Shown: positions 2,486 to 64,000, counted from the first letter of the stretch. The stretch: 64,000 bases of DNA from Botryllus schlosseri (GCA_051294905.1 CM119373.1:8246001-8310000); one strand, 5' to 3'. The notes: generated by a model from the sequence alone, not told the origin. Numbers and translations are program-made.

Positions 2486-3799
2486 AACTTTTACGAAAAA
2501 GTATTGATTATAAAGGAATCAAAATTTCTGTGAAAGCATAATACTCAGAATTTTATTTCCGTTTTGCTGATTAAATAACAATTACCATACATGAGGATAG
2601 CTCGCTACTTATATAGTATCACAGCAATGTCCTCCAATAGTACGGTAAGTGACTTATATTTTCTCGTCGGCAAGTTAAAATACATACAGATTCTGCTGAA
2701 TGACGCCTTCCAGAAGGACCATGACTTGGTATACCCACTTCGCCTGCAACGAAATGCCGTTTCATTTTCAACGCCTGCCCTTTTATTGTTATCTTCTATC
2801 ATCACATAATACGCCACTATAATAGCTATTATATCATAAATCATCGCTGGTATTCACCGACCGTGCGCATTGCGCAGCGATATACCGGCATATTCATCGC
2901 TTCGTACAGCAACAAACGCAAGACCGTCACGCAAGTATCCAAGATATTCACTAATCAGGCCAAACATATTAGGACGTCCAATTAGTCACAGAGTCCGTTA
3001 TATGTATTCAACCTCCAATACTCCGACCCATTCCCATCGACAACCATGCATTAAACCAACAAAAACTCAACTTTCCACCGTCTGAATTCTATGTGGGATT
3101 AATAGTGGTACACGTAACAATGGGTAGCTCCCTACGCAAAGCGGAGCGTGACCAATCTAAAGGGAGTTGAAAATATTATTGCGCGCAGTGTAAATAGAGT
3201 AGTTCAACTTATATAGATATTTCGGTATATCAATGCACTAATACCAGTATAATATAAAATATTTATAGTATTATGGGCAATAATACCATAAATATCCATT
3301 TTACAAGATAATTGCTGCAAAACCATGCAAACAAAATATGTTGCGGATGAATATTAATTAGGCGTTTAAATCAGTCGTCACTCCATCCTACAGTCTCTAT
3401 ACTTTCACCCTCGTCACAAGGGTATGTTTGTTTACCAGTACTTCCTGCTTCAAGTCAGTGTTGCCAACTCCGGATGGAAGAAACCGCTAAAACATGCTAC
3501 TGTAGGACACTATGGTGAAATTGTCAATAGTATATGGTCTCCAATGAAAGAAGATGAAGTGAATTGTTGTGAATTTAATCGTTACTCATACTTAGCCACA
3601 TTGCACGTTCTTTAAAAATCTGGATTACGTATGCAAGGTAGGTAGGCATATGTGACATATTAATGAGCACGCTTGAAAATAAACTAATTTCCTGTTTAGT
3701 TGATTCAGCCTATGGATTTAGTCACGCATCAACGTTCAAAAATCAGGTTTTTATAAATTCTAAACAACCTTTCGCGGGCCGCACTTTGCCCAGGCCTGC

Positions 3800-11296: not shown

Positions 11297-14200
11297 TTAG
11301 CATTTTGCAGAAGCCTTCGAAGTCAGTTTGCGAATCTTGCGAAAGTTTTTCTTCGGTGCCTCTTCAAGCATCGGTTTGGCATTCAAACGCTTGAGGTGAT
11401 TTTTTGCAAAACAATTGAAAGCACTTTGCACATTAAGGTTGAAGTTCAAATGGCTAGATTTACATTTGACATGCATGAGGTAACGAAAACAAGATGTAGA
11501 AGACACAACATAACGCATTGCATTCAGAAAAACATTGCGCTGATTCATACAGCACATCAACTTTTTTAACGTGACTTCATCTGCTGAAACAGCTGAGAAA
11601 TACTGCACAGCCAATAATGTAATGGCAAAGCAAATTTCAGTTGGTTCAGCAAGTCCTCCACGATCTGCCATGTCAAAAATCGTTTTATATCTCTCAGGAA
11701 TGCAGCCATTAATATCTGGAACATTATTAATACCGGATATGAGCACGCCTCTGCAGTCGTCACAACGCCTACGGCGGAAAATTGAGCGACCAATATATCC
11801 ACTAACAAAGACTACAACAGATGCATCAGTATCGTCCACATCATTTGTGACGACAGTTTTCATGAAGTCAGCAAGCCACTGGAAATCTTCGTGGTTTGCT
11901 GATGCATCTTCCTCGCCCGGTTCACAACTGATGATTGCTCTGGACAGTCCATCCCGCTGCAGCAGGCTTAGACACCAAATTTTTTTTCCGCCAGCAGCAA
12001 TTACTTCACAGACATGAAGAAATTACCGCCATTGCTCTGCCGATACATCCCAACGATTGGGTCGGACATTATTTAAGGGGGCACTTCTCTTTAGAAATAA
12101 TTTTTTTGTGTTTTTTTTTTCTTCATCGATCTAGAACGGAAATTTCACGCTCTTTCCAAATATGTCATTATTTTTATGATATTCCAACTCCTTCTTATCC
12201 AAAACTAGTTTCTTTTAGGGACCATTTTATAAAAAAAAGAATTACAGCCCAATTTTTGCTGCAGTCGTGTTCATTATAATCCAACATTCGCCTTTGCTGG
12301 GGGAAATAGCGCCATCTGGTGAAATCTATGCTGTAGAGCTCGAAATGAGTGTTCTAGTATAGTTCTAGCCAGTCTGCCTTCATAAACTTGGCTGCTTCCC
12401 AGATTCAGTAAGCAGGCGAGTTGAGGCTGTTTTTTTCATTTCTTTTTTGATTTGTTGACTGATAACTGACAATATTGGGTGGTATTTATTGTTTGCTTAC
12501 AAATAAGTGTTCTAGCATGTCTGCTTTCATATACTTGGCTGCTTCATTGATTCAGTACCAAGGAAATGGTCCAGATGGGGGTTGTGTGTTGTCCTATTTC
12601 ATCTTTTTTTATTCATTGACTGCTGACTGACAATATTGGGTAGTATGTATTGTTTTTTGATAACTGTTTTGGATTGGTTTTCATTTCTAGCTATCAATAT
12701 GCCTAGAATGAGTCGATCAAGGAAATTTAGAGTTTTAGAAGAATCTTTGAAATGGAAAGATGCATTGGTGGATTCACCAAAACCCAAAATGAGTCATTCG
12801 TTGCGACCATAGGGCCAAGGTGCCTGAAGAAAAGGTACTTATGAACTATGGCAGTAAAACGTGCTGTAGCTATGTCCGTACTGAACTGGAATATTGGATG
12901 CAGTGTATACTTGAGTGTTCTTGAAAGCCTAAACTTGCCAGTGAACACGTTCACAAAAATGGAACTGGTTTGAAGCGAAAAAAAAGACAGACTGCATCTC
13001 GACGCTCTCTCGCTGTGAAAAATTTAAAGAGTTCAAGAGTCCTTAGACACATCAGACTATGTGCCTGGCGGCTATTAATGCTCAGGTGGTGTTATATATG
13101 GTTCAATGTGTGATGCAAATCAACTAATGTGGCCATTGATGTCATGATCAGTGTTCATATCCTTGTTTTTCGAAGTTATTGTAGTTTTAATTTTTTAAAC
13201 GCGTTTTTCTCAAAATATACTTTTTCTGCACAAAAATTGTATCTGCTCGGCACCTGCTTGTCCGATTCATCTGAAATTTTGCACAAATGATGGTTAGGGT
13301 ACGTATAATAAAATAATGGAGCGTTTTCTCAAAATTTTGTCCAGAAAAATTTTTACAGGGGAAAGAATCTTGAAAAAAATAAAAATTTAGGGTTCGCTGA
13401 CAAAAATTTAATAAATTTTGTTAGAAAACCTTTTTTTGAAAATCCCTCCATTATTTTGTAGGTATATACCTGTACTATTACTTCAACAATATTTGAAGGA
13501 AAATCTTGACAGACTTTTGAGTTTTTAGGATTTTTAATACGCGTGTTCAATATTTTCATGTTTTTTTGAGTAAGTGTACCGATGGGGTACATGCTCATGG
13601 TACAACATAAAGACCATATTTGGAAAGGAAATTTCCTGCCCTTTCCAGCAATGTATGAATCATTGGGCTCGCATCTACCTTTGGGAATTTATGACTACAA
13701 ACGTGAACACCTAAAAAAATCACTTTTAAAGAGAAGTGCCCCCTTAAATATTCCACATTCTGAGTTACTTGCAGATGCTCCGTCAACGACAGCACAGCCC
13801 CCATTGTCTGAATACAGGTCATGAATGTTTCATTGCTGAGACCAGCACAGCCCGACTTTTGCCAATTCTTGAAAATGTCGATGGCTCTTCTCAAATAGTT
13901 AACACCGGGATGATCCTCACCAATTTGCAGTGGCGTGAAAAATGAATTTCTTTTCCGCACGGCTGAAATGAATATTTTGTCGCATCAGATAAAGTCAAAT
14001 TGCAGCAAGAAACCTATGTAATGAAAGTTTTACCTTTACTTGGGCTTTTACCAGACATGATATTCCAAATGGTTTGGATGAATTCAACATATTTTGCAGT
14101 TTGCAGAAATTCTGGATGTCCTTTCTCTGCGAAGTGCTTTAGTCCCACTACTGTTGAATCACTAAACACACCTGAAGAAAAGGGCAGCAATCAGGTCATG

Positions 14201-16029
14201 ATCTTTACCAAGGATTGTTCAAAGTCGAGACGGCGAGCTAACATTGACATATGATACTTACTCAAAGCGTGCTGAGGTGAAGTTCGGACGATGCTGCTGG
14301 GATTAAGGGAAACTTTTTTGAGTTGATGTGCAACTTTCAATGTCTTGCCTTCTTCCAGAGCATTGAGGGTTTTGATATGAAGGAACTTTGCATGGCATGA
14401 CACTCCCAGTATATCCTCATTGTCTTTAGTAGGGGGGTGCATCTGCTTCTTATTCACAAAATGGTTGAAGATGTTTTTGAAGTTGTGAGTGAAATCGAAA
14501 ATCAAAAATAATTTTTCTCGGGGTCGATATGGATGTTCGATGCTATGACGAAGTTCTCCATTACAGAGATCCATGAATAATTTCCTAAAAATAAGTATTA
14601 AATGCCTGTTTAACAACTTCAAAAACCAACAAGGATATAAAAACTCACCGGTTACGGACATGGTTGTCTGTTGATATTGCTACCACCCGTAGTATATCGT
14701 TGATCTTTTCCATCACTTCATCAAACCATGTTCGCAGCGTCTCAGTGTCAAGTTTGTCAACCGGAATGAGACAAACCACATCCTTGTACTTCCCAAAAAG
14801 TGATTGCACCATGAATGTTAACACCGTCTTAGCGGGATTGCCACTTTCCGCTATCCCGATGAAAGAACCATTTGTATATTCCACGCGCTGTGCGGTATAA
14901 ACCTCGTCTATCATTAAGGTTACAATTTTTTCTCGGTCGGATAAAGATTTAGTGCTTTCCTTCAAATACGTCATATCAAGTTTGCCTGGCGACACTGTCA
15001 TATCTTCACATAATCTGCGAAGGTGGCGTACTGAAGGCAAAGCAAAAATGTTCAGAAGCTGTGTATAGAGAGCTGGACTTGTAAATTTCCACATGAATGC
15101 AGTGGTTAGAAGATCTGTCGAGTATCTCCGGGAATTGCGGGTCACTTGACAGAGTGACAATTGCTCAATAATAAATGTGATCAACATTGGGTTGAAATCT
15201 GCACAGTTAGTAGATGACATCTGCACAGTCAGGTACTCCTCCAATAGAGATACAGTCAATTCTATGTGGTTGAAATTACTATCGCCGCTGGACAACGACT
15301 TGCATCTGGCAAGAATGTTGTTCAATTCAGATGTCTTCTGAACGTAATTTGCACTCAATAAATCGTCATAATTGGAAGGCGGAACAGGGGCGCCTTTAAT
15401 GAATGCACGAATCTTCATGTCCTTCGATACTATCACAGAAGCTGTGAGTATGGGCGTCTGATGAATATCATTTGACGAAGTTATAAGGTGGAACTGCAAT
15501 GTTTCATCATCAGTAGAATAGACATACCCAGCAGGGAGACGCTCTTTCTGAAACTTTTCTTTCAAAGAGAGTAGGTCAACCACACATTCTTGCTGAATAA
15601 ACTCCTCATTGCATTTTTCTCTGCGGGAATTCTCGGTGGAAAGGCGAGCAGAGGAGGAGCAGTTCTTACTTCGAGGTCTCGGATTGGGGCTTGTTAGATA
15701 ATTTGGCAAAGTTGAAAAAATATGAGGCACAGCAGTAGATTTGAGCCGTTGTCTCGATAATGCTACACAACCACGATGTTTCAAGCGCCGAGACTTCTTG
15801 TCACTTGAAGTATATTCGAAATCGTCATCCGAAAAGTGTAAACGGCAAACTTTTTGTTCAGATGAAGCAACTAGAGCTTTTCTTGGGATTGTTTTAATCC
15901 TTTTTTGCGCATGATAGGATCAGATGGAAAGCTATAGCATGAAACAACAGTGCTGTTGCTGCTTTCCGATTCATCTTTTGTCTTTTTATATCCAGATCTG
16001 CATCCCGGAACACAACATTTATAGCCCAT
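11297..16029 (-). pseudogene. P-element (THAP9-like) transposase, four spliced exons, disrupted
   Basis: THAP MGYKCCVPGC...CRLHF...AVPHIF (1-bp deletion near 15901), LMIDEVY, ISTDNH, FDFTHNFKN, C-terminal GYIG...CDDC...DRGGLAEP; GT-AG introns near 14650-14585, 14260-14172 and 14030-13965; Kolobok insertion; catalytic Glu codon deleted. Confidence 0.9.
12077..13743 (+). mobile_element. Kolobok-type internal-deletion derivative inside the P transposase
   Basis: TTAA on both sides (12073-76, 13744-47); TIR GGGGGCACTTCTCTTTA; remnant near 12740-13078 reads CIGGFTKTQNESFVATIGPRC...AVAMSVLNWNIG...DYVPGGY*, like a Kolobok transposase C-terminus. Confidence 0.88.
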
Positions 16030-16950
16030 TTCTATACTGTATCATTTAGCTGGTATAGTGCTGCAATAAAATGTGTCAATAATAAATAATCTAGCGCGAG
16101 TTCAGACGGCAGAAGACTTCCTTGATGCAAACTGCTCTAAAATAGCACGTTGTTTAGACATCTAAACACCACAAACCTACACCTCCGTACCGGAAATTGT
16201 ACAACATACCGGCACATCTAAACTCCACCAAGCTACAAGATCACGGAAATTGTACACCGCATAAGCACTTCCTTCGCTTCTGACAGCTGATCGCATGTGA
16301 ATCGGCCGACTTTTGTTCCTATCTAAAGCAAACAAAGCTACGCTTAGGTCGCGGAAGCGGTACGAAATACGAGCAGCCCCGTCGCTTCTGACGGCTGATC
16401 GCAGACTGTCGGCCTACTCCGGGCCGCGTTGTCTGACGTCACGCGCATATTGTCCAATCCCGAGCTTCTAGATATCCCTGCTCCCTTTTGACGCTTTTTT
16501 CGAAATCGTTTGTGGCCATTTTTGTATCTGTCACAAAAAGCACCCATTACACAAAACTAATGTCTACACTCTATATAGAACTTTATCTTGGACATGCTCA
16601 GCAAGTTTGATTATGATAAGCATGAATTTTACAGAGTACATATACGTTGATCCTGCGTATAAAAATCCATTTTAGGGTCAGGAAACAAAATGCAATGCCG
16701 CGACTTCACCCGGCAGTGGTTTTATAGGATTTTGTGTATCTCGGATAACTAGCGGCGGGAGTCGCTAAGGTTACGGTCTACGGTTGGCTGCGCGACCGTG
16801 AAAATTGACACTTAAGTCTGGTGGTGCGCTGACTTGGAATTGAGTGCCGATCTGAACGGATTTGAGTGTGAGTATACTTTTTGGCGTGAGCTGAGCACTG
16901 AGTCTGTTGCTTGAGTAGAGAATCGCTGCTCAGCAGAGGAATTGGGCTCG

Positions 16951-17428
16951 GCCCTAAAAATGATGTGGTCTCAAATTGAAGGTAAAAATGAACAAAAATT
17001 TTTGGTTGCAGCCATTTCCTTCAGAACGCCACCGTAATGGAGCTACAATTTATTGAAATTTCTACAAGACCAGCTGCCGCGACTGCTTAACCCGTTACAT
17101 GGCACGATGTCTTCATCGTCGCACTTGCTCGATGCGATAAGGCAGTCACGCAGAGAACGAAACTTAGACACATTTCCTTCATAACATCGACTGACAACTA
17201 TCTAAAATTCGTTCTCTGCGTGACTGCCTAATCGCGTCGAGCAAGTGCGACGGTGAAGATATCGTGCCATGTAACGGGTTAAGCAGCAGCGGCAGCTGGT
17301 CTTATAGAAATTTCAATAAATTGCAGCTCGATTACGGTGGCGTTCTGAAGGAAATGGCTGCGGCCAAAAATTTTTGTTCCTTTTTACCTTCAATTTGAGA
17401 CCACATCATTTTAGAGCGCAGTGCCCCT
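16951..17428. mobile_element. Foldback MITE (about 210-bp arms, about 40-bp spacer) with one Kolobok-type end
   Basis: 16951-17170 is the reverse complement of 17205-17416 at about 90% identity; right end CAGTGCCCCT|TTAA; matching left end absent. Confidence 0.8.
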
Positions 17429-47129: not shown

Positions 47130-47681
47130 ATCTTAGAAACAACTGATGTATGAGAGTATATGCTAGGCTTTTTCATGTACAAGCGAGAATACGATATATA
47201 CAATCTGCGAATATGGTCTAAGCAGCCCAGATGTAATTCCATGTTTAAAATTCCGATAAGTGTTTGCGAGTCCAATCACTCTTTCAACATGAATCCGTTA
47301 AGTCGAAATTCTCCTATCACAACTTCCTTCCCCTGTTTCGAGTTGACTTTTGCCACGTAATGGGGCCGGGGTGTTTATACCAACATTGTATGGTGGAAAC
47401 AGATCCTGCACCATAACACCACTGTCAGCCATTATACTGTCACCTGCCTGAAACATGGTGGAAACTGCTTCACGTGGTGCTATCCCTATCATAACCTTCA
47501 CAGTAATCAGGTTTTTATAATTTAAAAATGTCTGACTTTGTAAATTAATATCTGTTGCCTTGCCGGTAGGAATTTCAGTAGCATCGACAATCACCCTTGT
47601 GGTCGGAAAAACTTTCCCAAAGTCCCTTGGCGTAGTCTCGTCAACAATCTTGCGGCTTGGCCATATTAGCCACTGTCTCAT
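47130..47681 (-). pseudogene. DDE region of the ISL2EU-2 transposase (internal deletion, frameshifts)
   Basis: RQWLIWPSRK, TRVIVDATEIP, MIGIAP, DSIMADSG; joins 58272 across TSD GTCTCAT to give TWILSMHSRMRQWLIWPSR. Confidence 0.85.
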
Positions 47682-49388
47682 TATAGAGTATGACTGGAGT
47701 GACGACTCGATTGTTCTCCCATTGTTAGCCGGCAGAATGGTCACGGTCAGATGGCTGCACCCAAAATAGGATCGCTCAGTGCTAGTTTCAATGGCGTTCA
47801 AGGCGATTCGTCGTGTATTTCTTGAAGTTGCGTCGGATTTAGTTAGACAGTTCAACATTTAGGTAGCGGTGGCGAGTCGTTATGACTAGTGAACAATACC
47901 GTGTAGCCTATGTTACATTTCTCACGAGATGGATGTGATATTGTTGCTTTGATCCTTTATAGAGTTTGCTACGTATATGAATAAAATGACAGAAGGTATA
48001 GAATATCTGGTTCGTGTGCATTGGCTATTGTGAGATGAATTCATGGAAAGGAAGACTGAAGAATGCTACAAAGTGAACAAGAGGAAAGATCTTGACCTAT
48101 ATCGATATGCAATTCACAATATCGTTGATTGAAAATATGTCCTATATCAACTGCAGAAACTCGAGTATGAATATAACAAATAATTTGTTGCAACTGTCTT
48201 GTAGTCTTATATAATGCCTGTCCGATAACCGCAGAAACTTGAGTATGACTAGAACAAGAGCCTAGTGTAATGTTAGTGTTCTGCTTGAGCTCGACTCACA
48301 GTAGCCAGAGCTTATACTCCTTGGAAGTGTGCAGAATCGCACTTGAAGGGAACTCGTTGTCATTGCCAAGAATACAGGAAGACGTCCGCCGGTCGACATT
48401 AGTAGTAAGCCAATGCACCACGTCAAGGTTTCGGCCAACTCATTGGTTTCCTTTTTTTAGGTAGGGAACCTCAATGTGGATAGGCAGCATTTGCCACAGA
48501 GCGAAAAAATTACCATGCTAACACTACCAGAAACTACATTAGCTTCATTTGCTGCATCTTTTCTTGGTCATGGGTTCCTGGCATACTTTCGTCTAAAGAT
48601 TTTGATCATCATAGGCATAGTTGTATTGGCACCTTTCCCTCCATTTATAGCCTTACGCTGGCATAAGGCATTTACTGAGTAACTGACTTGGCTAATATCT
48701 GGATTCCTGCTGTATCTCATCAAAGACCGCTATTAAAAAGGCAATCGTTAATTCAGGTTAACATTCGTGTCCTTGTTGACAACGTGATCAGTTCTGCACA
48801 AGAACTGGTACAACTCGTCGGCGAGTTGGATTGGAGTATTCGCTGCGAGTATGACTGACTTCGTAGTATTAATAACTGACTGCCAAGTCCAGACACAATA
48901 GATCCCCGATGTGTGTATTACAGAATGGCGTACGATGAATCCAGACTATAGCATAACGTTAAAAATTACGTTGGCAAATACTCTAAAATATGAGATCACA
49001 ATAATGACAGTTAGAATCAAGAACAACAAAGGACCATGTTTACAATGCGGCGACTATGGAAAGACTGAGCATGTGCTACTACACATGCCCTCATGCGGCG
49101 AGGCGGTCATGTGTGACGTTATCATAGATACAGTCTGAAAACCAACTTGACATAGCCGCCCCCGTGGCGAAACATAATTGCAAAAGGCAGTTATCGTTGA
49201 GACACAGGAATAAATGAAGGAATGGAGGTTTTCAGATTATGAAGACAATCGGGGAGTGAAGAATTATACAAACCAGAAACAATGTACAGAAAGCTAATAT
49301 AGCATCAGCAAGCGAAGGCAATGTACAGAATGTGCATCATGAGTAAATGCGATGCAAATTGGCAAGAAGAAAGCATGCAATATGAAAA

Positions 49389-52300
49389 TTATTCCAGTTC
49401 AAGACGACACAATTTGCGGATGTCGCGGCTATAAGTACCAATGGGCGTACGTACGGTAACTTTACGCACCAATCCGTGCTGATCAGGGAAAACCTCCTCA
49501 ACAATAGCCTTGGGCCACTTGCCGCGGGGCGCATTTGAGTCGGACATGAGAACTACATCTCCTACTTTGAAGTTAGGTGTTTGGTCAAGCCACTTGGAGC
49601 GAGATTGCAACAACGGTAGGTACTCTTTTAACCACCTTTCCCAAAAGAGATCGAGTTTGCGCTGGACACAACGCCAATTTTTGGAGTAGTCATCTGCTTT
49701 ACAGAATTTGTGAGTTGGGACAGAGGGGTCAAGCCTTCCGAGAATTATTGAATTGGGAGTCAGACACGGTAAATCGCCTGTGTCATCGGACAGTGGCGTC
49801 AATGGCCTATCGTTTAAAATACGAGCGACTCCATAAAACAGTGCAGATAATGTGTTATCGTGAAATATTGCATTGTGATTCAGAGCATAAAGAACACGTT
49901 TGCACAAGGCTATACCACTCGCTCGACGCAGCCATTGAAGTGCGGGGCGAGACTGGGTGAAAAGTGCCATTGGATGCCTCTGTCGGCTAGGGACGAGGCC
50001 ACTTGCTTTGAGTTTAGATTACCGACAGCCTTCGCAAGTTCTTTTTGCGCACCAACAAAGGTTGTAGCGTTGTCGCTGAAAATGTGGGCTGGCCTGCCCC
50101 GGATGTCACAGAATTTGAAAAATGCCATCAGAAAGGCTGATGTTTCTAGGGATTCGACCACTTCTAAGTGGACAGCACGAGTACATAGGCAGGTGAATAC
50201 GCAGCCGTAGCGCTTGAGCTCGGTGCGATTGCGTCTGCAGGACAACGGACCAAAATAATCAACCATTGTGTAATTGAAAACATTTTTGTGTGGCGTGAGG
50301 CGGTAATGCGGGAGGTCGGCCATGTATTGGGAGCCTAGAGTCGCTTGGCGACATTGACAGAATATACATTTGTTGAGCACTTTGCGAATGGAAGTCTGGC
50401 CTCTCATGATCCAGAATATTTCTCGAATTAGGGACAGAACTTGTAGCGTGCCACAATGGCCATTCGTGACATGGTAGTGACAGATGATCAAGCGAGTGAC
50501 ATGGTGCCCGGAAGGCAATATCATAGGATTCTTTGCATCCTCCGGGAGCTGAGAGCGATTTAGTCGGCCTTTTACACGCATAACCCCATTTGAAACGTAC
50601 GGTATCAATTTAGCCAAAGAATTGGGAACAAGCTTTTTGTTAACGAGAAACTGATCGGTGGCGCGTGCGTTGTCATGAAACGGTTTGGTGGCACCCGGGA
50701 ACGACTCGCTTTGCACGAGCCTAACAATTTCTCTTGTCGCTTCCTCCAGCTCATCGACGGTGAGGAAACCGGTGCGCGGTGCAGGCAGCGGGTCGCCAGA
50801 CGGGCCTTTTGTCTTCTTGCGCAGCACAGAACGTAGTCGTAAGATCCAGGCAGTCGAGCGGACGAGTTTCGTGAAAGAGGAGAAACTGTTCAGGTAGTCG
50901 TTAAGCGATCTCGTTGTAGGTGTTACGTCTATCGAAAACACTGGTTCGATTTTTGTTGCGGAACGGTGAGCTTTGTTGTGTCCAGGCCATGAGTCTTCAG
51001 GCTGGAGCAAGAAGTCGGGCCCCTCGAACCACATTCTTGCGAGCTGCCAACGATGGGGCATTACGCCACGTGAGCCAGTATCTGCTGGATTGTTGGCGGA
51101 GGCAACATGCTGCCATTGCTCGACTCGCGACAGAGCACGAATCTTGAGTAGTCGTTGATGTACAAAAGTGTCGAATCGGGCCGAAGTGCTCCTGATGCTT
51201 TGGAGCACTGAGGTACTGTCGGTCCAGTAGTGAACAGTGTCGATATTGTAGTCAACATCTTTTATAACGTCTCGGGCGAGCTTGATGCAGGTTACGGCAG
51301 CCGTGAGTTCCAGTCTGGGAATGCTGGGAGCATTCTGCGGCACGACCCTGGAGATGCCTCTGACAAATGATATGTGGACGTTGCCGTCAGAGTCCTCGAA
51401 ACGAAAATAGCAACAGGCTGCATAGCCGGATTTACTAGCATCGGCAAAAGCGTGTAGTTGAATGTTCACGGGCGAGAATCCTGGTGGTTTATAACACCTG
51501 GGAAATGAAAGCTTTTCGAGTTCCGGAAGCGAATTGACCCATTTGGTCCACTTCGCACTGAAACTCTCGTCGATCGGTGTGTCCCAATCTAGGTCGAGAC
51601 GAGAAATTTCCTGTAGAAGTGCCCTTGCTGGTAACAGGAACGGGCTCAGGTATCCGAAAGGAGTATAGATCTGAGCGATTTGACTTGCGATGCCTCTGCG
51701 AGTGAAAGGCTTAGGTACGATGTTAGTGCGTGCACGGAGTGTGTCTTCATTCATGTTCCAGATAACACCCAACGTTCGCTCGTTATCTGAATTTGCGAAG
51801 TCGAGATCAACGAGATTGGAAGCGCGGGCTTCTCCGGGAATCCGGGACATAATCGCAGAACTACCGCTGGCAAATTTCGTCAGATTGAATCCGTAATGTG
51901 CGAAAAGCGTTCGCAGTTCTTCGACGATCTTGATAGAGGTCTCGAGATCATCTGATGAATGGAGTATGTCATCGACATACATGTTCCGGAGGATGCAGTC
52001 GAGAGTAGGCTTGGCGGCGTTCGTGCCGTTTTGCAAGACTATCTGTCGTAGGCAGAATTGAGCAACACATGGAGAGGACGTGCTTCCGAATACGTGAGAT
52101 GTCATCTGGTAATCGGTTGCTCTACCATCTAGCTTGCTGTCAGCGAACCAGAGGAATCGCAAGCTATCCGCGTCTTCTGGATAGGTTTGTATTCTTGAGA
52201 ACATCTGAGCGAGGTCTGCAACCCAAGGGTGCCTGCCCATACGGAAACGGCATAGGACCCCGATGAGAGAAGAATTCACGTCAGGGCCACTGAGCAGTTG

Positions 52301-55300
52301 GCTATTTAGACTGGTACCGGAGAATTTGCGGCTTGCGTCGAAGACTATTCGCATCTTTTGTTGCCGGGTGTGAAAATGGACGAGGTAGAACGTTCGCTCA
52401 GAGGAAGGCAGCAATTCTGGCGGAACAACTTGAGCGTACCCTCGAGATAGATACTCGTCGATTTTTTCCTTGTACTTTCGAAAGAACTCGGGATCTTTCG
52501 CGAATTTCAAGCGCTGGGATTCGAGCGATTTCTCAGCGGCTGCTCTGTTGTACGGGAGCTTCACGTCTTTCGTCCGCCACGGAAGGCCTACCTGGAAACG
52601 ACCGTTCAGTATGCGTGCCGTATCTTTCATCAAGGCGAGCGCGCGCTCATCGTCGATCGAATGTTGAGATTCGTAGGGGTCAACCCAAATGTCCGAAAAA
52701 TCAGCGTTACAGCTAGAACACAATGGCAATGTACGCGAATCGAGATGCTTAGAAATGCGTGTATCAACGTGTACGAAATTAATATCGATAAAATTGGCAC
52801 TATTAGGCTCGGCATCGGAGCTCGCCATGGTATAATCTGAGCCCCCAAGACACCAACCAAAGACCGAGAGCTCGGCCCCGGGCAAGCCGTTCTGAGGCTT
52901 GATAACTTCAGTGCTGGGGTAGCGCATTAGGAAATCTTTCCCAATGACCAAGTCGACATCATTTGTGTCGGCAACCGGTATATTAATGTGGCTGAGGTGA
53001 GTGCATTTAGAAATGGTATCAACATTTGGAGAGTGATTGAACACATCAGGAAAGTGGGGAGAGGCAAGCACATCAGGTATATCAATCACCGTGCTCTGAT
53101 CAAGGCCTCGGACGGAAAGAGCCACCACTTCTACCTCCCCCTCGGCGGTGCCCGTAGCTGTCTTGGTTCGACAAGCAATACGATCACCATGTAGATTCAA
53201 TTTTTTGCGCAGGCGCTCTGTGCACAGTATAGAGCCACAGCCTGGATCTAGGAATGCGTTAGAGGTCACTCTAACTTTTGAATCGGGGGAGGTGATTATG
53301 ACCGGTACGACGGCTAAGCGCACAGGATTCACTTTCCCGTTTAGCGAGGATGACATCGTGTTGACGTCAGCGAATATTTTATTTTGGAAACCCCAGTGGA
53401 GTAGGGTGTGATGCGATGAGTTGCAGCCGTCGATGTAGCACTTGCGTTCTGACTTACATGTACGGGGTTCATGCCCGTAATTCAGGCAGGTGGTGCAGAT
53501 CCGTTTTTCTTCCACGCACTTTTTACGCTCATCTGGGGTCTTCTGATGGAAGACGTCGCATTTGTAGATCTGGTGTGTGCCACTGCAGAGATGACAGCGC
53601 GGTGGCGGCGGTCTTTGCGAATTGCTTTGTCGACGTTCACTGGAGGCACCGACGGGGCGCTCAACGGTTGTTGCGTTCACTTTCACTTGCGTGGTGCATC
53701 TTGCGGCTCTGGCGTTCGGCATGTTGGCTACGAGTCTTCCCATGCGAGTTCTCCCGATATCAGCTGCACTCACAACGAAGTCGACGAAGTCGTCAAAGGT
53801 TGGCTCGATGCCGTTTTTCATCGTATCATTGTACTTGTTCGTGAATCTTGTCATAAAGTTTTTGGGGAAGCGCTTTACTATTTTGTCAAAAACGCCTGGC
53901 GCGTTCACTTGCGCCTTTGCTCTAAGTTGTGCAAGGACGTACCTGGCCGTTCTGAGCTCGTCAGATACTTTTTGCAGCGCCCTACTGTCGCTAGGTTCAA
54001 CATGATTATCTTGAGTTAAATTATCAATGAATGCATCAATAACGTAGTTTTCGCGGCCAAATTTATCGTACAGAATTTTGCGGGCATGTGAGTACGCTTC
54101 CTCGTCATGCCGATTAGCACGACAACCAGAAAGTGAAGCCTCCGCATCACCAGTACAAAACGAGATCAATCTATTTAGTTTGGTCCGGGCTGAGTGTCTC
54201 TCACTAGGATGTGCATTTACAGGCTCGAAAGCGGAATCAAATTCATCGATAAAACGGTAGTAATCTCGCGGGCTGCCATCAAAACTTGAGATTGTTATGG
54301 TCTGTAGGTCCATCCCACGTTTCATGGAGCCTAGCATACTGTTCAATGACATGGCACAAGGATCGTTAAGCGAGTTCCCCGAACCGTGCGGTGGAATAGA
54401 AGCGACATAATCCCCATGCGGGCGATAATAACTAGAACCGGTTTGGTCGCGGGAATGAGGACTGTGCCAAGTGTGCTCATATGGCGCGTAATGTCTATCG
54501 GCGCCTGGATCGCGATAGCGAGAGGTGAGATCAGAGTGCCCATGGGGCGCGTAATGACTATAGTCGGCTTGACCGTGGTAATGAGAGGTTGGATAGGTGT
54601 GCGTGTATGGCACGGTATGACTATGGGCGGTTTGCTCGCCATAGCGAGAGGTTGGATCGGTGTGCGCGTACGACACGGTATGACTATCGGCGGTTTCATC
54701 GCGATAACGAGAGTTTGGATCGGCGTGCCCATATGGCGCGTTATGACTATCGGCGGTTCGATCGCGATAACGAGAGGTTGGATCGGCGTGTGCGTACGGC
54801 ACGGTATGACTATCGGCGGTTTGATCGCGATAACAAGAGGTTGGATCGGCGTGTGCGTACGGCACGGTATGACTATCGGCGGTTTGATCGCGATAACAAG
54901 TGGTTGGATCGGCGTGCGCGTATGGCACAGTATGACTATCAGCGGATTGATCACGATAGCGAGAGACGGGATCGTTCTGCCACTGTGGAGTACTTTGCGA
55001 ATACGAGGGAGTTGCTGGCTCCGAGCGCGAATGAACGGGCTGGGAATGTGTGCCTATCTCTCGAGCCTGGCTACCAAGATCATCAGCTGCGAAACTGACG
55101 GACAGACGACTGCTACGGTTAGGGGTTTGTCTTAGATCATGCGCGACTTGAGTACTAGCCAATGCCGTCGACTGATGAGTGTCTGTCAACGATAGGGTTA
55201 CCGCCGGCTCCGTTGCGAGCCTCTGCCCAGCACTACTGGCTGTGGCAGATGCAGGCGTTCCCCAGGTAACGAAACTCGATGTTTGCGTAGTGAGTAAATC

Positions 55301-55963
55301 TAAAGGTTCAGTACTCACAGCACCATTTTCTCCTTCGAGGACAAGTGATCCGACGGAACCGCCGCCGGATTCTTCTTCGGCAATTTCCAAGTTTGAAGTT
55401 AATTCGAGAATCTCCATATTTTCTTCAAGTTCTGCTGCGATGCTAGCTTCTTTGGCTTTTTCTGTAGCTCTTCTTGCTTGTTGTCTGAGTTTTATCTTTT
55501 CGATTGACAGTCTAGCATCGCGTGCTGCGGATGATTTTTTGGAAGATGTGACAGAATGAGGACTCGCAGGTATCTCCGAGGTTCGAGGCTTAATGTAGTC
55601 AAGGGTGACATCGGAAGAAGAGTTTACGTTCTCTTTTCGGTAATCTTGGAAGGCGCGACCAGCCTGACGCTGACCCTGTACGACTGTCAACAACAGTCCT
55701 TGTATCTGCAAGACGCTCTCCTGTAGAGCAGGATTCATTTTAGCTTTTTCGATCAATCCGTAGAAGTCGTCAATGAGTTTACTGCATAGTTCATCTAGTT
55801 CGCAGTTACACTTGATAGCGTTTTCAGTAGACGACGTATTCTGTAAGGCGGAGGAGAAAGCGTCTTTAGCTTTCTCGTAGGCAACTCTGGAACTTTCCAG
55901 GACTGCGTCGATATGCTGCTTGTTCAACTCTTGTTGACCAACGGCTTGTAAGGTTCGATCCAT
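49389..55963 (-). CDS. BEL/Pao Gag-Pol polyprotein (Gag, three Cys/His knuckles, protease, RT, RNase H, integrase); one frameshift near 49915
   Basis: First ATG MDRTLQ; CHLCSGTHQIYKC, CTTCLNYGHEPRTC, CYIDGCNSSHHTLLH; AFLDPGCG; RNMYVDD; LHAFADASKSGY; VDYFGP, SDNATTF; removing 2 nt restores GCVERVIALCKRVL. Confidence 0.95.
54440..54965 (-). repeat. 63-bp coding tandem repeat (21 aa, about 8 copies) in BEL Gag
   Basis: Unit SRYRDQTADSHTVPYAHADPT; GATCGGCGTG recurs at 54781 and 54844. Confidence 0.95.
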
Positions 55964-55982
55964 ATCGAGGTCGGTCAGCACT

Positions 55983-55998
55983 CGTAATTTTTAACTTT
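55983..55998 (-). promoter_or_regulatory. Non-tRNA primer-binding site, complementary to the element's own LTR (56186-56201)
   Basis: Sense strand after the LTR is AAAGTTAAAAATTACG; the LTR sense strand contains CGTAATTTTTAACGTT (15/16 complementary, 13 contiguous). Confidence 0.7.
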
Positions 55999-56949
55999 TG
56001 TCCTTGTTGACAACGTGATCAGTTCTGCACAAGAACTGGTACAACTCGTCGGCGAGTTGGATTGGAGTATTCGCTGCGAGTATGACTGACTTGGTAGTAT
56101 TAATAACTGACTGCCAAGTCCAGACACAATAGATCCCCGATGTGTGTATTACAGAATGGCGTACGATGAATCCAGACTATAGCATAACGTTAAAAATTAC
56201 GTTGGCAAATACTCTAAAATATGAGATCACAATAATGACAGTTAGAATCAAGAACAACAAAGGACCATGTTTACAATGCGGCGACTATGGAAAGACTGAG
56301 CATGTGCTACTACACATGCCCTCATGCGGCGAGGCGGTCATGTGTGACGTTATCATAGATACAGTCTGAAAACCAACTTGACAATTCGTAAATAATATTA
56401 ATGAATGTCAACTGAAGTTACCAAAGATCCAAATGCTGCTTCCATAACACCATTCAAAAGCCGAATTGCTAGCTTGACCAATGATCAATGACCATTTTCT
56501 TGGACCATATTTGTATAGAACTCTGATCTTGGTGGACACTTTTGGCATTCTTGAAATTGGATGTAAATTTCACCGACTTGTTACTAGTGGTAACCAGAGT
56601 GGAACAACATCGTCGGGTGGTTATAATGGTACCTATAACCATGGAAGTATTTCCTGCCAAAAATCTCAACATTTGTAAGAGATATGCTGGAAAATATAAG
56701 AATATTTCAATCTTCTCCGAATTGTTCACCTCTGGCCAGCGGGCCATATCTTTGACACCCCTGCTTTACATTATAGTAAACCCCACAGTGATAGCAGTAG
56801 CAATTGTCAAATTGGTTAAGAAATACCATGGCTTATACAATTCCAACAATAACAAAAAAGCAAAGACTTTCAACAGCATCATGATTGAAACAAGAGGTTT
56901 GGAAGTATAGAAAATGGTGCTATAAGAGCATATTGTTCATTGTTTTTTC

Positions 56950-57990
56950 AAGCTATCTCGCAAACATTTGGAAAATTTGGAAGACTTTTTCTGCTTCTCA
57001 TGCAATGCAAACTTCGCAAAATTGTGAGAACAGATGTTATTCAAGTGGTGTTTCATTGCCTTGTCCATGACATCCTCAACCTCATTTCGGTCTGAACCAG
57101 ATGGAAGTGATACAGTGTGAATCAATTTGTTATAGAATGGATCGCATTGAATTGCCTCAAGTACCCAGAAAAATTTATCTTTTTCATGGGTTTTGCCATT
57201 TCTTTACTGTGGATAACATAAAAGCGGAGAACCATGTCATGAGACTGTTCTCACGCGGGCTCTTCAATCCACCGTCTTTCTTCTGCTCCACTTTAATGAG
57301 GTTTCCCGATGGTGCTGCAGTTGTTAGGCACGTGGCATGCTTCGTTGGCTTGCTTAGAAATGGCTCCCAAAAGCATTCCACCAATATATTCAAGTATGTC
57401 TAAAAACACGTCAAAGTTTTTCCATGGAAAGGCAAAGTATAGGCTATTCACTTACCAGATTCCTTGCTGTTGACTCCTTTAATCTCTGTGATTGGATGCT
57501 GCTCTTTACCGCAGACGAGAGAATCAAAAATTTTCAGAAGTAATGCTGAAGCTGGCAATTGTGGCAAACCCAGAAACTTGTTAGCTTGATGGCAGATATT
57601 AGAATAATGTTGATAAAATCCGTCAACACAAAGTTTACAATATTCAGAATGGAGTTTTTCCACCAATGGAACAGCTTTGGTCAAGTCTAGTTCCTCAATG
57701 ATGGGGTGCATTCAAAGTATTTTTTTTGCTATAAGCCCTCTTCAAAACAGCAATTATACAGCATCCTCAGATATATTCCAATTACTGGTGAGAACTTCAT
57801 GATTTTTGAAACGTTTCTTCAAAGCTTTCACAGTGGGAATTGGGAAAGGATGCTTCGCATTCCTCACAAAACACACCTTTCCAGTTATTAAGTCCTTCGA
57901 AACATTCTTCAATTTCCATTTAGTTAGTCCATCGCAGTCATCCCCAAAGGCCAACGTGATGCGCCCGAATAGGGCATGATACCGACTTCT
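56950..57990 (-). pseudogene. Unknown 'WED-FEGLD-C2H2' gene, copy 2 (most complete; spliced, frameshifted)
   Basis: DDCDGLT.EIEECFEGLNNWKGVFCEECEASFP-TVKALKKRFKNH; LPQLPASALLLKIFDSLV...VNSKESG|gtaagt...ag|DILEYIGGMLL...KKDGGLKSP...KCLRDSLKKQ*. Confidence 0.7.
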
Positions 57991-58271
57991 ATCAGTTCTA
58001 TGCGTGACGAAGTATGATCTAATTATGGCGAAAAATATAACAGAGGCTACACGGTATTATTCGCTAGTCGTAACGATTCACCATCGCTACCTAAATGTTG
58101 AACTGTCTAACTAAATCCGACGCAGCTTCAAGAAATACACGACGAATCGCCTTGAACGCCATTGAAACTAGCACTGAGCGATCCTGTTTTGGGTGCAGCC
58201 ATCTGACCGTGACCATTCTGCCGGCTAACAATGGGAGAACAATCGAGTCGTCACTCCAGTCATACTCTATA

Positions 58272-59051
58272 GTCTCATTCTACTATGCATGGACAGGATC
58301 CAAGCTTGAAATATACTTGATACCGTGGCCATTGATAGTTTATACAGAATACTGATTTCCTCAAAATCTTTGCTCAACGGTCTCAACTTCATCAAGGTCA
58401 AAAACAACTGTTCCTCACCGCTCAAACAGTGAAATTGACTGGCTGTCTCCTCTGCGGCAGACTTCTCAATAACAGAAAATGAGCGTAACCATAATCATCC
58501 AATCCAGTATAATAATACATTGCACGGGCATCTCCTTTGAAGTTTTCAATTGAGAAGTGATTTATAATAGTACCGGTACGCTCTATGGAAACTGCTTGCA
58601 CCTGGCAAGCTCCATCGCATTTACTACTAACGCCAGTGCAATCAAAAAAGTCCCTTGTATCACTGACCGTCTCTTCTCCAGCTCTATTCTGGTGCTGACA
58701 TTCATCCTCGACTGTCAAATCAACATTTAAAATGCTTCTCCGAACCCTTCTCTCTGTTCTAGCAGATAGTAGCTTATTAGCTATGCTAAATTGAAAAATG
58801 GACGGGACGGCATTTTTTTTCAACTTTCCATAACGGCGCTTGCTGACCGATTAAGGTTGCTGCACGTAATCGTCATCCGTAAAATGGCTGCTACAAACGC
58901 GGTCACGGTCCAAGTTAGGTCTCCAAAGACCGCCTTTATCACCCTTTCTCCTGAGAGCTACTGGCCACTTTAACTGTAACTCCATGTCAATGGGAAACAT
59001 GTGACCCGTGGATGTACTATTACATCTTGGGACACAGCAGTAATGGGGCAT
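58272..59051 (-). pseudogene. THAP and N-terminal part of the ISL2EU-2 transposase
   Basis: MPHYCCVPRCNS...FP...LRRK...VCSSHF...LKKNAVPSIF...FSIENF...YYTGL...EEQLFLTLMKLR. Confidence 0.88.
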
Positions 59052-59132
59052 ACCTCCTTTTACAGCTTATCTATATCAGTAAAGACGCGTTACGGGAATA
59101 GTCAAATGCTTCGAGCAAGTTCCATTATAGAG

Positions 59133-59230
59133 CAGAGGTCTCAAACACGCGGGTCGCATGCATTTTGTGCGGCCCGCAACAGCATTTTGGAATTTCAAGT
59201 ATTCGACAATATCCAGTGCCACTGTCTTTT
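59133..59230. mobile_element. hAT/Charlie-type MITE end
   Basis: CAGAGGTCTCAAACACGCGG...GCGGCCCGC; related ends at about 39080-39150, 39440-39510, 56735-56765 and from 60258. Confidence 0.6.
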
Positions 59231-59749
59231 TTAGATATAGGAACTTGAAGTTCACCCTAAAACTACTATAAAGACCTGAAATCTCAACAGACTACACTAT
59301 CACATCACTTTTAACAGCTACCACGCGGTAGAAGATCAGCTATTACGTCACATTTCTAGTTAGTGATGATAAAACATGACCCGTTGATGATTCGTGACTG
59401 AAAATTGTGATTTGGTTTTGTGCGATCTTTCGTAAAATTACTCGATTTCGGATTGGCTGGGTGATTAAATAAAAATGACTCGAGTTGAGTCGCATCAAAC
59501 GTTAAAATCATAGAAGGACTTGCGACTTGGAACGGTGACTTGGCAATCCCACGGATGCCAAAATCTATGAAACTGTCATGGGGAATAGTAATATATCAAA
59601 AGGTCGTACCTGGCGTTGCGTATGGTATAAGTCTACTCAGAAAATGTAGAAGTACGGCCTACCTTGTTACTGACCACCTCAGGAATTATTACGCATCTCG
59701 AGAGCATAAATTAATGAATGCCATCTACTATTTTGCAAATGACAAATCA

Positions 59750-60132
59750 TTACCGGACTCACGCCGATTGAGACCGAAAGCAGAAGTAATAGGCTCCTCC
59801 TCTTTCACATGCACCAACACATCGAAAACCTTTGGTAAAACCATTGCAGCACCCAATTGTGGTAAGCTACTCGAATGGTGGAACTGATTTTATCAAGCAG
59901 TTGGCTGACTAACATGCAGTCCTCCGTATGGAGATCCCTCTATGATCATCCATGTTGCTGTCGGGAGTTGGATGATAATGGGTTTTGGCGTGTTTCCAAG
60001 CTCTTTTATTGTGGGAAAGGTGGCAGAACATGCTGCACACGAAGCTCCTCTCCGGTCATCCAAGCCTTCGAATAAGTATATAATTTCTTCCGTCATTCCC
60101 TTGCAATCCTCCCATATCATTTCTTCATCCAT
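59750..60132 (-). pseudogene. Unknown 'WED-FEGLD-C2H2' gene, copy 3 (first coding exon)
   Basis: MDEEMIWEDCKGMTEEIIYLFEGLDDRRGASCAACSATFPTIKELG(K)HAKTH...SLPQLGAAMVLPKVFDVLVHVKEEEPITSAFGLNRRESG|gtaatg; same intron position as copy 2. Confidence 0.7.
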
Positions 60133-60557
60133 ACCAATCAGTCCACCAGACTATAGACATATAAAAGTAACAAAATGACAGCGCAGTACTCACCTACGGG
60201 CTACTTACCGTACACAGTTTTAATTCGCAACTGAACATCGGTCCCTACGTTCTAGAGCTGGGGTGGGCAAACTACGGCCCGCGGGCCGCATGCGGCCCGC
60301 AACACCGTTCTGTGCGGCCCGCGAGAGTCTAAAGAAACTTCTAAAAAATATTGATAAAATTCGTTCTAAAAAATCGAATTAATGCAGGGACTTGATGAAA
60401 CTTTTTCTCAGTATATGTCATCATGATAATTCTAAGGCAGTGGTTCTGAAAGTGGGGTCGCGCCCCCTTGGGGGCGTGAAAGCATTTGAAGGGTGGTGCG
60501 AAGCTGAGCTCAACTGAAAAAATTTTTCGCGCTTGCGTTGATTGCAGAAGATGGTAG

Positions 60558-62240
60558 TTGATTGCAGAAGATGGTGATGGAGGGAGTGTTGTTGTTTGCG
60601 TCTTTGTCTTGGTGTCAGAAGATGTGGCATCGATATCCGAGATGGCAAGAATCTTTAAAAAGTACAACAGTAAATGGTGCGAAACTGTCACTATCATGGC
60701 AGATAAAGATTTTACAGAGCGTCACGTCTTTAAAGCAGATTTCCCGGATGCCAAAATTTTGATATGTTTATTTCATGTGCTGAGGACATTTCATGTGTTG
60801 AGGACATTCCGAAGAGCATTGACTTGCGATAAAATGGGAATCACTGCTTCAGAAAGAAGTTATATTTTGAATATTGTACAAGATATGGCGTATGCAAGGT
60901 CTTACTTGCATTACGAAGAATTATATCAAAAACTGATTGACAGTGGATTGGGAAATGTCGTGTCATACTTCAACAAAAACTGGCATGACATCAAGGAAGA
61001 GTGGGTGTATGTCTATAAAAATACTGGTGTGACCTTTCAAAATCAAACAAACAATAGAGTTGAGTGCATCAACCAAAAATTGAAGGCTATTATTACCAAG
61101 TACTCTAGTTTGCAGCAGTCTTTTCACAATTTAATGCTTGTCATCATGAAGTCTCTGCGTACAGAACAATTCCATCGATCCATTTCAATTCTGCAAAAGG
61201 TACCTGTACTGCCATTTGAGGTGGGTAGTACAGAGCACCAGTACGGACAGATCCTCACACCATATGCTCTTGAAAAGGTCCTCACTCAGCTCAAAACCCC
61301 AACAAAACAGAATGGAGAAGTTCAACCGTCTGCGCACGACTGCAAGTGCGCTTTCCGCCAGTCAATGAAATTACCAGTCAGAAACACATGGTAAATATGA
61401 AATATACAATAAATAAATTCATGACACTGAGACATTTTTCAGATACTGGGATAGTCAATTTTTGCTACAATGTGCAACGGATGTCAACAACGGCACAACA
61501 GGTGTCTTTTGTTCTGTGACTGTGCTTGATATTTATTTGTATCCGCCTCGGTCCTTGCAGGTGACAGCCATACTGTGGAAGATACGGCGTACAGTTCTGA
61601 GCAGAGAAAGACTGTCCTCATTGTTGAGATGACTGGTTTGTTATCATTTCACCTTGGAAGTTTAGGCTTTTACCACATATTTTGTCTTTCACCAGGTACA
61701 GAAAAAATGTCTTCAAGTAATGAATCAACTGATCACAGTGATCAGTCAAGAAACCTTGAACCAGCAATAGACACTTCCATTTGCACATCGGGTGGACTCA
61801 TTTCACCGCTATGATTCGTTTTTTTAGTAATATCTGGTGAGCCTACAACTACTACTAAATTATTCGAAACAATGTACTGATTCAGTGATCAGCCGATCTA
61901 TTTTGCCGGTTGTAACAAAATAAAGATTTGGTTTATGTTTTAAATTGCAGAAAACAACACACCAGCAGTGTCTGGATTTGTCAAGCAAAACATCAAACCC
62001 TCGGAACAGTTTATTGGTTGTTTGGCTAAATGAATTGAAATTTGAGCTCGCGAAATTATAGAACTCTTTCATCTTGGTGTTCCAGATCTTACCAACATAA
62101 CTCTTCCACCACAAATGAAAAAACGAGGTCGTCCAAAAGGCCTTGAGCAAACTGCGGTGGCTCTTCGAAAGAAAAAGAAATCAGACGGGCCGGTTAGATT
62201 TTCAAAGAAGCACCCTAAAGACATGCAGCAATGTAAGTTC
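60558..62240 (+). pseudogene. MULE transposase (ZSWIM3-like) with SWIM finger, 5'-truncated and fragmented
   Basis: TIMADKDFTERHVF...ILICLFHVLRTF, YFNKNW, TNNRVECINQKLK, CKCAFRQSMKLP; downstream MKKRGRPKG. Confidence 0.85.
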
Positions 62241-62849: not shown

Positions 62850-64000
62850 TCTTGCCACAAACCATGCAAGTCAAATCAGCCTTTCATTTGCTGTGACTAC
62901 TGGACTCATTTGAAGTGCACCAAACTGACAACACCGCAATTCAATCATATCGGAACTACTGATGAGTATTATCATTGCTGCCAATGCCTAAACTCGGAGT
63001 TACCATTTTCATCACTTGACAAGATGCAACTAACAAGGGAATTATCTTTTGTCAAAAAGTTATCTAGCTCTGACTTACCTAAGGGATTCTCTAATTATTA
63101 TAGTATAGAAGAATTTAATGCTCCTACTGATGATAGCCCTTATATTACAATGCTACATGCTAATGTAAGATCACTTTCTAAAAACAGTGGCTCCGTCACT
63201 TCGTTAATTTCTGAGTTTTCTAGACATCCTGACATACTCGCCATAAGTGAAACGAGATTATCTACTGTCCTTTCTTTTGACGTCCATATTGATGGATATA
63301 CAATTTATACATTTATCAAGGCAAATTCTGCCACAGTAGTGGGTGGAGTGGGGTTCTATATTAGGAACAATGTCCAATTCCACATCACTTCAGAGTTTGG
63401 CCTGAATCTTCAAGGCTGCGAAGACCTGTGGATTGAAATAACTTTGGTGAAAAACAAAAAGAGAGAAAACATCATAGTAGGTGCAATTTACAGACACCCT
63501 CACCAATCGATGGCTCAATTCATAGATGCAATGGAAAATTGCTTCGAGAAGTTGACCCTACAACAAAAGACTTTTTACCTGTTGGGAGACTTCAACATAG
63601 ACCTCCTTAAATCAGATAACAAATATTATGTGGATCTGTCCAACCTAATATCATGTTTCTCGTGTCTTTCAATAATTAAAGATCCAACTAGAATAACTCA
63701 TAACTCACAGACAGTAATTGACCTCATATTCACCAACAATCAGGTCGAGCACCAATCCAGAATATTATTAAGCGATATATCTGATCACTTACCAACTTTC
63801 TGCAAAATCATGAATGCTTCAGTAGGAGTGAAACACAAAATAGCCCTACCTACACTCGAAACTATAGAAATCTCTCGGAGGACAACTTCTCGAATGAACT
63901 TTTTGATGCAATAAATGACCTTGAAGTCGAAAGTAGAACTCAAACTGATGATATAAACAATAACTTTTCATCTCTAATTAATACCATCAACTCCCTAATG
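62850..64000 (+). CDS. CR1/L2-type LINE ORF2 N-terminus: PHD finger plus AP endonuclease; frameshift near 63820; runs off the window
   Basis: CHKPCKSNQPFICCDYWTHLKC...CCQCLNSELPF; HANVRSL, ILAISETRL, GGVGFYIR, VGAIYRHP, LLGDFNIDL, IDLIFTN, SDHLP. Confidence 0.9.

Follow-up and report, generated by a model that had tools for sequence, protein, structure and literature searches.

Within the 64,000-nucleotide stretch of Botryllus schlosseri DNA analysed here (the window; C3:8,246,001-8,310,000, C3 being contig 3), positions 47682-58271 had been described from the sequence alone as a 10.6-kb DNA transposon of an unassigned family. We find that this element, e2, is very probably a non-autonomous P-superfamily derivative of a family with two genes, one for a zinc-finger protein and one for the transposase, with a BEL/Pao retrotransposon nested in it and a Harbinger element as its host. 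The placement in the P superfamily rests on a P-specific set and order of transposase domains, on the terminal inverted repeats (TIRs) and on a 7-bp palindromic target. It thus bears out the proposal of the sequence-only reading that the elements belong to a P-related lineage with an accessory gene, as supported by the domains of one genomic copy (L052), the two genes of a relative in another organism (L067) and the GTnnnAC target consensus.

Structure of e2

e2 and a second element of the window, e1 (1340-3401), lie where they had been placed; both run from TATAGAG to CTCTATA, are flanked by exact 7-bp target-site duplications (TSDs) and have the TGGAGYGACGACTC box in common, as described. 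e2 starts with TATAGAGTATGACTGGAGTGACGACTCGATTGTTCT and ends with the reverse complement of TATAGAGTATGACTGGAGTGACGACTCGATTGTTCT, whereas e1 starts with TATAGAGACTGTAGGATGGAGCGACGACTCATTGTTCT. The reported contrast between their TIRs is real, with lengths of 33 nt plus a displaced 33-nt block in e1 (29 bp in the earlier description) and 242 nt in e2 (about 235). The parts of e2 and of its surroundings are as follows (L032 is the reference copy of the family and L052 a copy with transposase exons, both described below).

47298-47681, continuing at 58279-58823, minus strand: Harbinger/PIF transposase remnant (DDE_Tnp_4) hosting e2; PF13359, 29.2 bits, cut-off 24.8
47675-47681, no strand: left TSD copy GTCTCAT, 7 bp, same as 58272-58278
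47682-47923, plus strand: left TIR, beginning TATAGAG, with a TGGAGTGACGACTCGATTGTTCT box at 47695-47717; 242 nt, 95% complementary to 58030-58271
47924-48521, minus strand: non-coding internal part of the P-type element; blastn against L032, reference 3235-2917 and 1603-1330, reversed
48522-48767, minus strand: remnant of the transposase 3' end, last exon at 48548-48720; tblastn with the L052 last exon, 88-91% identity
48768-56383, minus strand: nested BEL/Pao long terminal repeat (LTR) retrotransposon, 7,616 bp, LTRs at 48768-49152 and 55999-56383
49910-55981 and 49389-49970, minus strand: BEL/Pao gag-pol open reading frames (ORFs), between the LTRs
56389-56919, minus strand: transposase 3' remnant, continued, QDxLE exon at 56410-56484; 58% identity over 38 aa to L052:2361-2579
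56940-57409, minus strand: zinc-finger gene exon 2, degenerate; tblastn with the family ORF2, 58-79% identity
57451-57960, minus strand: zinc-finger gene exon 1 (one C2H2 finger), degenerate, with in-frame stops; 61% identity over 171 aa
58030-58271, minus strand: right TIR, terminating in CTCTATA
58272-58278, no strand: right TSD copy GTCTCAT, 7 bp

The DNA transposon proper is a 2,969-bp deletion derivative, and the size of 10.6 kb is misleading because 7,616 bp of it belong to the nested element. The latter is a young BEL/Pao retrotransposon: its 385-bp LTRs (TG...CA) are identical at 384 of 385 positions, it is flanked by a 5-bp TSD, ATTCG, at 48763-48767 and 56384-56388, and its 2,023-aa minus-strand ORF matches the Pfam models Peptidase_A17 (Pao; 1.3e-42), DUF1759, RVT_1 and Integrase_H2C2. 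Its gag region contains seven tandem 63-bp repeats (54410-55039; 64-82% identity), the encoded 21-aa unit being rich in Y, R, D, H and T.

A paralog of e2 on the same contig (L045, C3:6.483 Mb) was aligned to the window after removal of the LTR element and of one ATTCG. The two sequences are 99.87% identical over 3,169 bp, flanks included, with zero gaps; L045 is therefore the empty site of the retrotransposon. This pair belongs to a recent large segmental duplication on contig 3, which matches window 47582-61394 to C3:6.483-6.578 Mb and whose window copy alone has the BEL/Pao insertion; an ORF of a MULE-type transposon is 100% identical at C3:6488688 and C3:8306558, and further pairs of identical matches, spaced by about 1.81-1.82 Mb, extend over 95 kb or more. 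The order of events is thus Harbinger, P-type element, segmental duplication, BEL/Pao. On the host side, the ORF at 58422-58823 resembles a THAP plus helix-turn-helix (HTH) region by eye and has no match in Pfam. What had been annotated as a single 10.6-kb element is accordingly a BEL/Pao element inside a P-type element inside a Harbinger element.

Two further claims of the sequence-only reading hold in part. The zinc-finger gene said to be carried by both elements is present at full length in e2, albeit degenerate (a second comparison of exon 1 gave 64% identity, with two TGA and one TAA codons), while e1 keeps only a 42-aa N-terminal remnant with 52% identity. Likewise, neither element has an intact DDE transposase gene, as had been noted, but remnants of one are present in both: the last transposase exons in e2 and a THAP-exon remnant in e1.

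A repeat family with TATAGAG ends and 7-bp target-site duplications

That the shared ends define a transposon family was borne out in the genome (495 Mb, 219 contigs). The pattern TATAGAG N(3-15) TGGAGYGACGACTC has 189 matches (92 forward and 97 reverse) against 0 for the reversed control, and four in the window against 0.00 expected; the matches are mostly paired, about 3.47-3.51 kb apart. Exact 7-bp TSDs flank 28 of the 31 copies with both ends in hand, and at the other three a CAGTGGTTC-type miniature inverted-repeat transposable element (MITE) adjoins the terminal TA. Across 29 sites the target consensus is GTnnnAC (G1 19/29, T2 28/29, A6 28/29, C7 18/29). The TIRs of the family are 242-261 bp long, and in the reference copy each contains the octamer ACGACTCG twice, in opposite orientations. 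Correct annotation is thereby gained for about 100 repeat copies.

The MITE in question starts with (G)CAGTGGTTC. It adjoins the terminal TA of L042, L047 and L049, which suggests a TA-targeting MITE that repeatedly landed on the last dinucleotide of the P-type element; it also occurs at window 60437-60500.

The common 3.5-kb form, exemplified by L032 (3,495 bp), is bounded by 261-bp TIRs, contains two ORFs, of 172 and 156 aa, and is devoid of a transposase. Its non-coding half is built from very high-copy repeats, since the contig depth of L032 1722-3125 (reference 1622-3025, non-coding) was 50-200 times that of the coding half in four of four runs. Longer end-pairs (4-18 kb) were considered as autonomous copies; with the exception of L052, all proved to be 3.5-kb forms enlarged by nested insertions.

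Transposase exons within the same ends

L052 (C3:8,035,799-8,042,074) has TATAGAG ends and a 7-bp TSD, CTGTTAC, and carries transposase exons between its ends. In the reference orientation, its left part comprises reference 1-268 and 1284-1333, followed by 3.93 kb of new sequence, and its right part comprises reference 1330-1603, 2917-3412, a 1,187-bp insertion and 3408-3495. The deletions of L052 and of the 3.5-kb form are therefore complementary. The new sequence holds a collinear series of exons that opens with two THAP-like exons and continues with a P-type HTH exon (PF12017, 15.7 bits, in the collinear position), an RNaseH_N domain (PF21787) in two exons (profile 2-73 at 19.4 bits and 74-134 at 22.6 bits) and a GTP-binding insertion domain (PF21788; 1-55 at 25.5 bits, cut-off 24.8, and 54-114 at 24.3 bits). 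It closes with a QDVLE exon and a short last exon ending in a stop codon.

Six copies, namely L031, L035, L040, L043, L045 and L047, retain differing lengths of the transposase 3' end, a pattern that fits independent internal deletions of one ancestor. As pieced together from these sequences, the ancestor would have been about 7.4 kb long and would have comprised, in this order, a TIR, the zinc-finger gene, the transposase gene in the same orientation, a non-coding stretch and the second TIR.

A two-gene relative in another organism

When 1.84 billion proteins were searched exhaustively with HMMER, using exon 1 of the zinc-finger gene, only a few true homologs were returned, and a conserved host-gene family was not among them. 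One of the homologs (P0012) lies on two contigs of the ENA assembly ERZ21736675, which have in common an 8,334-bp block (L067 and L068) with 99.5% identity. The block ends in CATAGAC...GTCTATG, with a 32-bp TIR and 7-bp TSDs (GTAGTAC and GTTCCAG). L067 has homologs of both zinc-finger exons, its ORF2 being 34% identical to that of the family (E = 2e-24), and, on the opposite strand, a transposase whose exons are collinear with those of L052 and 41-61% identical to them. The P HTH (PF12017) scores 27 bits (cut-off 23), the RNaseH_N exon (PF21787) 25.6 bits (cut-off 24.6) and the GTP-binding insertion domain (PF21788) 18.4 bits. By eye, CCIPGC...ICEIHF followed by GALP..HLP fits the THAP pattern C-x4-C...C-x2-H. 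L052 and L067 both contain the motifs xVDEM, ADGxxxN and QDxLE, and the TIR of L067 has the motifs ATG(G)ACTGGA and ACTC(G)ATTGT in common with the families studied here. By its predicted gene content, L067 is a complete two-gene relative of the TATAGAG family.

Features of the P superfamily are found in this lineage: the TNP/THAP9-type RNase H core (PF21787) in L067 and L052, the PF21788 GTP-binding insertion in L052, which splits the RNase H fold and is peculiar to P-type transposases, the PF12017 HTH upstream of the catalytic core (above cut-off in L067), and TIRs with 7-8-bp TSDs at a palindromic target.

The zinc-finger gene

In the TATAGAG family, a 59-nt phase-1 intron (GTAAGT...TTTTTAG) joins the two ORFs into a gene with a 323-aa product and one C2H2 finger, although the C2H2 matches on an intact family copy are all below the Pfam cut-offs. 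The gene is real, as judged from three observations: the phase-1 intron is at the same codon in the family gene and in its L067 homolog, contigs of runs X7 and X19 (guessed to be RNA) omit exactly the predicted 59 nt, with GT..AG ends, and 17 copies that differ by about 2% from their consensus have a ratio of nonsynonymous to synonymous polymorphism (pN/pS) of 0.49.

Its relationships are narrow. A word-indexed homolog search returned only two near-identical short Logan proteins. Exon 2 has no relevant match in Pfam even at E values up to 10; the protein gave nothing relevant in a profile search of the PDB and no match in the ESM Atlas, and its model had no Foldseek match in the PDB. The ORF1 model gave only generic helical matches in the VIA wide structural search.

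A third copy of exon 1 lies in the window outside e1 and e2:

59752-60132, minus strand: zinc-finger exon 1, diverged and broken; 33% identity over 166 aa, E = 2e-15

This fragment is flanked by two ends in the same orientation (59126-59180 and 60250-60320), which start with TAGAGC and have in common a GC-rich stretch, GCATGC...GCGGCCCGCAAC.

e1 and a sister lineage with convergent genes

e1 derives by deletion from a sister family.

1333-1339 and 3402-3408: TSD CTTTCAC, 7 bp
1340-3401, plus strand: e1, 2,062 bp, TIRs at 1340-1372 and 3369-3401
1915-1971, plus strand: THAP exon 2 of a P-type transposase, remnant only; 19 aa with 58% identity, E = 3e-5
2348-2473, minus strand: N-terminal remnant of the zinc-finger gene, in convergent orientation to the THAP remnant; 42 aa with 52% identity, E = 8e-10

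The 33-nt TIRs of e1 are 94% complementary, and the displaced 33-nt block is so at 82%. Other sister copies (L059, L060, L063 and L065) also retain remnants of THAP exon 1 or exon 2. More generally, e1-type copies of 2.1-2.3 kb have a THAP-exon remnant on one strand and the zinc-finger 5' end on the other, in convergent orientation, as expected from the internal deletion of a convergent two-gene element. Six genomic loci have such an arrangement: each has an exon-1 homolog with 52% identity whose frame is open and, in its vicinity, the closest homologs of the RNaseH_N exon of L067, the two genes being on opposite strands and convergent, with a gap of 2-3 kb at five of the six loci and of 13.5 kb at the sixth. 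Sister loci of this two-gene type are placed at C13:20,488-20,498 kb, C14:7,207-7,218 kb, C14:22,126-22,136 kb, C9:23,833-23,843 kb and C6:589-599 kb.

Weighing the two-gene interpretation

Several points weigh against deriving e2 from a two-gene P-type family. The ancestor is reconstructed from overlapping derivatives and was not itself observed; among the TATAGAG copies none with both genes intact was seen, and the genome yielded only two with the transposase, the second such copy being listed at C9:6,575-6,584 kb and C15:23,808-23,818 kb. Several of the single-exon Pfam matches are below the curated cut-offs, the Pfam THAP model does not match the split exons of L052 and L067, and L052 has a Ser where L067 has the third Cys of the THAP zinc ligands. 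When two transposase exons were compared singly with the PDB by phmmer, no match was obtained, the Drosophila P transposase included. As regards the zinc-finger gene, the RNA status of X7 and X19 is a tool's guess, and a pN/pS of about 0.5, computed without correction for transition bias, is weak evidence of constraint.

The zinc-finger gene itself can be read in other ways. It might be a captured host gene, acquired by transduplication as in Pack-MULEs and without a role in transposition, an idea in keeping with the captured fragments that non-autonomous elements often carry, with the weak constraint and with the lack of any detected transposon-related domain beyond one C2H2 finger. We consider this improbable: the gene accompanies a P-type transposase in at least three diverged lineages here and in another organism, with 30-34% protein identity and a conserved intron position, and the few true homologs recovered among 1.84 billion proteins do not form a conserved host-gene family. 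Alternatively, the transposase may be split, the P C-terminal domain having moved to a separate, C2H2-fused gene (as exon 2) whose product would be an obligatory subunit acting in trans. Indeed, in both organisms the transposase of the lineage stops about 50 aa past the QDxLE exon, where canonical P has a further 187-aa exon, and is therefore without the canonical C-terminal domain. Moreover, the model of ORF2 is all-helical, and its structural alignment to the P transposase of Drosophila (6p5a_B) covers residues 617-734 of the latter (Z 6.8, root-mean-square deviation 3.4, with 99 of 118 residues paired and a rank of 10 among 48,161 chains); in hhalign, its LEYIGG is matched to VSGYIG, a motif conserved in canonical C-terminal domains (score 17.4, where the best of 25 column shuffles reached 16.3). 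However, the shuffles are barely exceeded, the hhalign E value is 0.06-0.13 with a probability below 1%, the global alignment fails, and neither Pfam, blastp nor Foldseek against the PDB gives a match. The Z score is below the tool's caution line for helical bundles, the unrelated helical part of ORF1 also matches 6p5a_B (Z 4.4), and the predicted local distance difference test score (pLDDT) of the exon-2 model is only 65. The modelled link between the zinc-finger protein and the P transposase C-terminal domain is thus marginally supported, and we hold a split transposase to be unlikely, though a good deal less so than gene capture. If it were true, transposition would need two proteins, and the roughly 90 zinc-finger-only copies would be half-autonomous partners and not dead derivatives.

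There is very little room for another superfamily with long TSDs (hAT, MULE or Dada), in which the association with the transposase would be coincidental nesting. TSD lengths of MULEs reach down to 7 bp, and a MULE/ZSWIM-like fragment lies 2.3 kb from e2; its fuller copy, L066, was considered as a partner and has neither TATAGAG ends nor a zinc-finger homolog. The transposase remnants are collinear in many copies and have differing breakpoints, which indicates internal deletion and not nesting. Dada elements have TSDs of 6-7 bp, but they are without TIRs and target small-RNA genes (PMC3706591); they are ruled out by the 33-261-bp TIRs and the diverse target sites found here.

On the favoured interpretation of e2 as a derivative of a two-gene P-type family, the 3.5-kb form would have lost the transposase and kept the zinc-finger gene, and in other copies the zinc-finger gene would be gone, or only the last transposase exons would remain. 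A P-type transposase, supplied in trans, would bind the subterminal boxes through its THAP domain, excise the element and integrate it by a 7-bp staggered cut. The zinc-finger protein would be an accessory factor encoded by the element, and putatively a regulator or a cofactor that binds the TIRs. Its gene has been kept in diverged families and in two organisms, in tandem and in convergent arrangements, and also in the most successful deletion derivative, which suggests a protein with an accessory or regulatory role in P-type transposition.

Other elements in the window

A canonical P-type element is also present in the window:

11075-16480, minus strand: canonical P-type element with one gene, CAGGGATATC ends, a 22-bp TIR and an 8-bp TSD, CTCCCTTT

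It encodes a THAP-RNaseH_N transposase (PF21787, 44.5 bits) with a 187-aa C-terminal exon. This element was considered as the source of the TATAGAG copies and rejected, because it has different ends and an 8-bp TSD. A MITE-like insertion with 45-nt inverted arms is apparently located at 12070-13750 within it.

The MULE/ZSWIM fragment mentioned above (60558-61394, outside e2) resembles ZSWIM1-3-like transposases (PF21056, 1.7e-14); by eye, L066, on contig C12, has an N-terminal exon like that of FAR1, a SWIM motif and, downstream, an ORF with a PHD finger. For this transposase, 26 matches were returned from the genome, which are exon-level matches and not a copy number. Elsewhere in the window, a foldback at 16957-17412 has two 212-nt arms, 93% complementary and 32 nt apart, and a 334-aa ORF at 62910-63914 has an endonuclease/exonuclease/phosphatase domain such as occurs in the endonucleases of non-LTR retrotransposons.

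Comparison with known systems

To our knowledge, the described P-superfamily elements (P, 1360, Galileo and THAP9-like) are all single-gene. A full-text literature search found no two-gene exception in the superfamily and no description of the TATAGAG family. Judged against the literature, it is unusual for a P-type element to have a zinc-finger gene as a second gene next to that of the transposase.

The ends of Galileo are CACTA, whereas those of the lineage described here are TATAGAG or CATAGAC. The lineage further differs from Galileo by its second, spliced zinc-finger gene, by a transposase that is made of many exons and is short at its C terminus, and by a host that is not a fly. In both, the TIRs are of unusual length (242-261 bp here), the P transposase is of THAP type and many copies are deleted and non-autonomous, and the targets are alike: Galileo has 7-bp TSDs whose consensus is GTANTAC (PMC4168063), to be compared with GTnnnAC here, and one L067 insertion is exactly at GTAGTAC. 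This likeness is drawn from the descriptions of Galileo.

With canonical P and THAP9-like elements, the lineage has in common the transposase domain set (PF21787 among others) and a cut-and-paste structure with TIRs and long TSDs. In contrast to the canonical P element of the window, it has a 7-bp TSD, TATAGAG ends and two genes, and is without the 187-aa C-terminal exon.

PIF/Harbinger elements have two genes, one for the transposase and one for a Myb-like DNA-binding protein. The resemblance to the present lineage is functional only, in that a DDE-type transposon also encodes a separate small protein of DNA-binding type: the superfamily is another one, the accessory fold is a C2H2 finger with a helical domain and not Myb/SANT, and the second protein here is a putative accessory factor. 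A canonical P element with an 8-bp TSD beside a lineage with 7-bp TSDs, both in one window, offers a natural setting in which to compare what determines the stagger of target cleavage.

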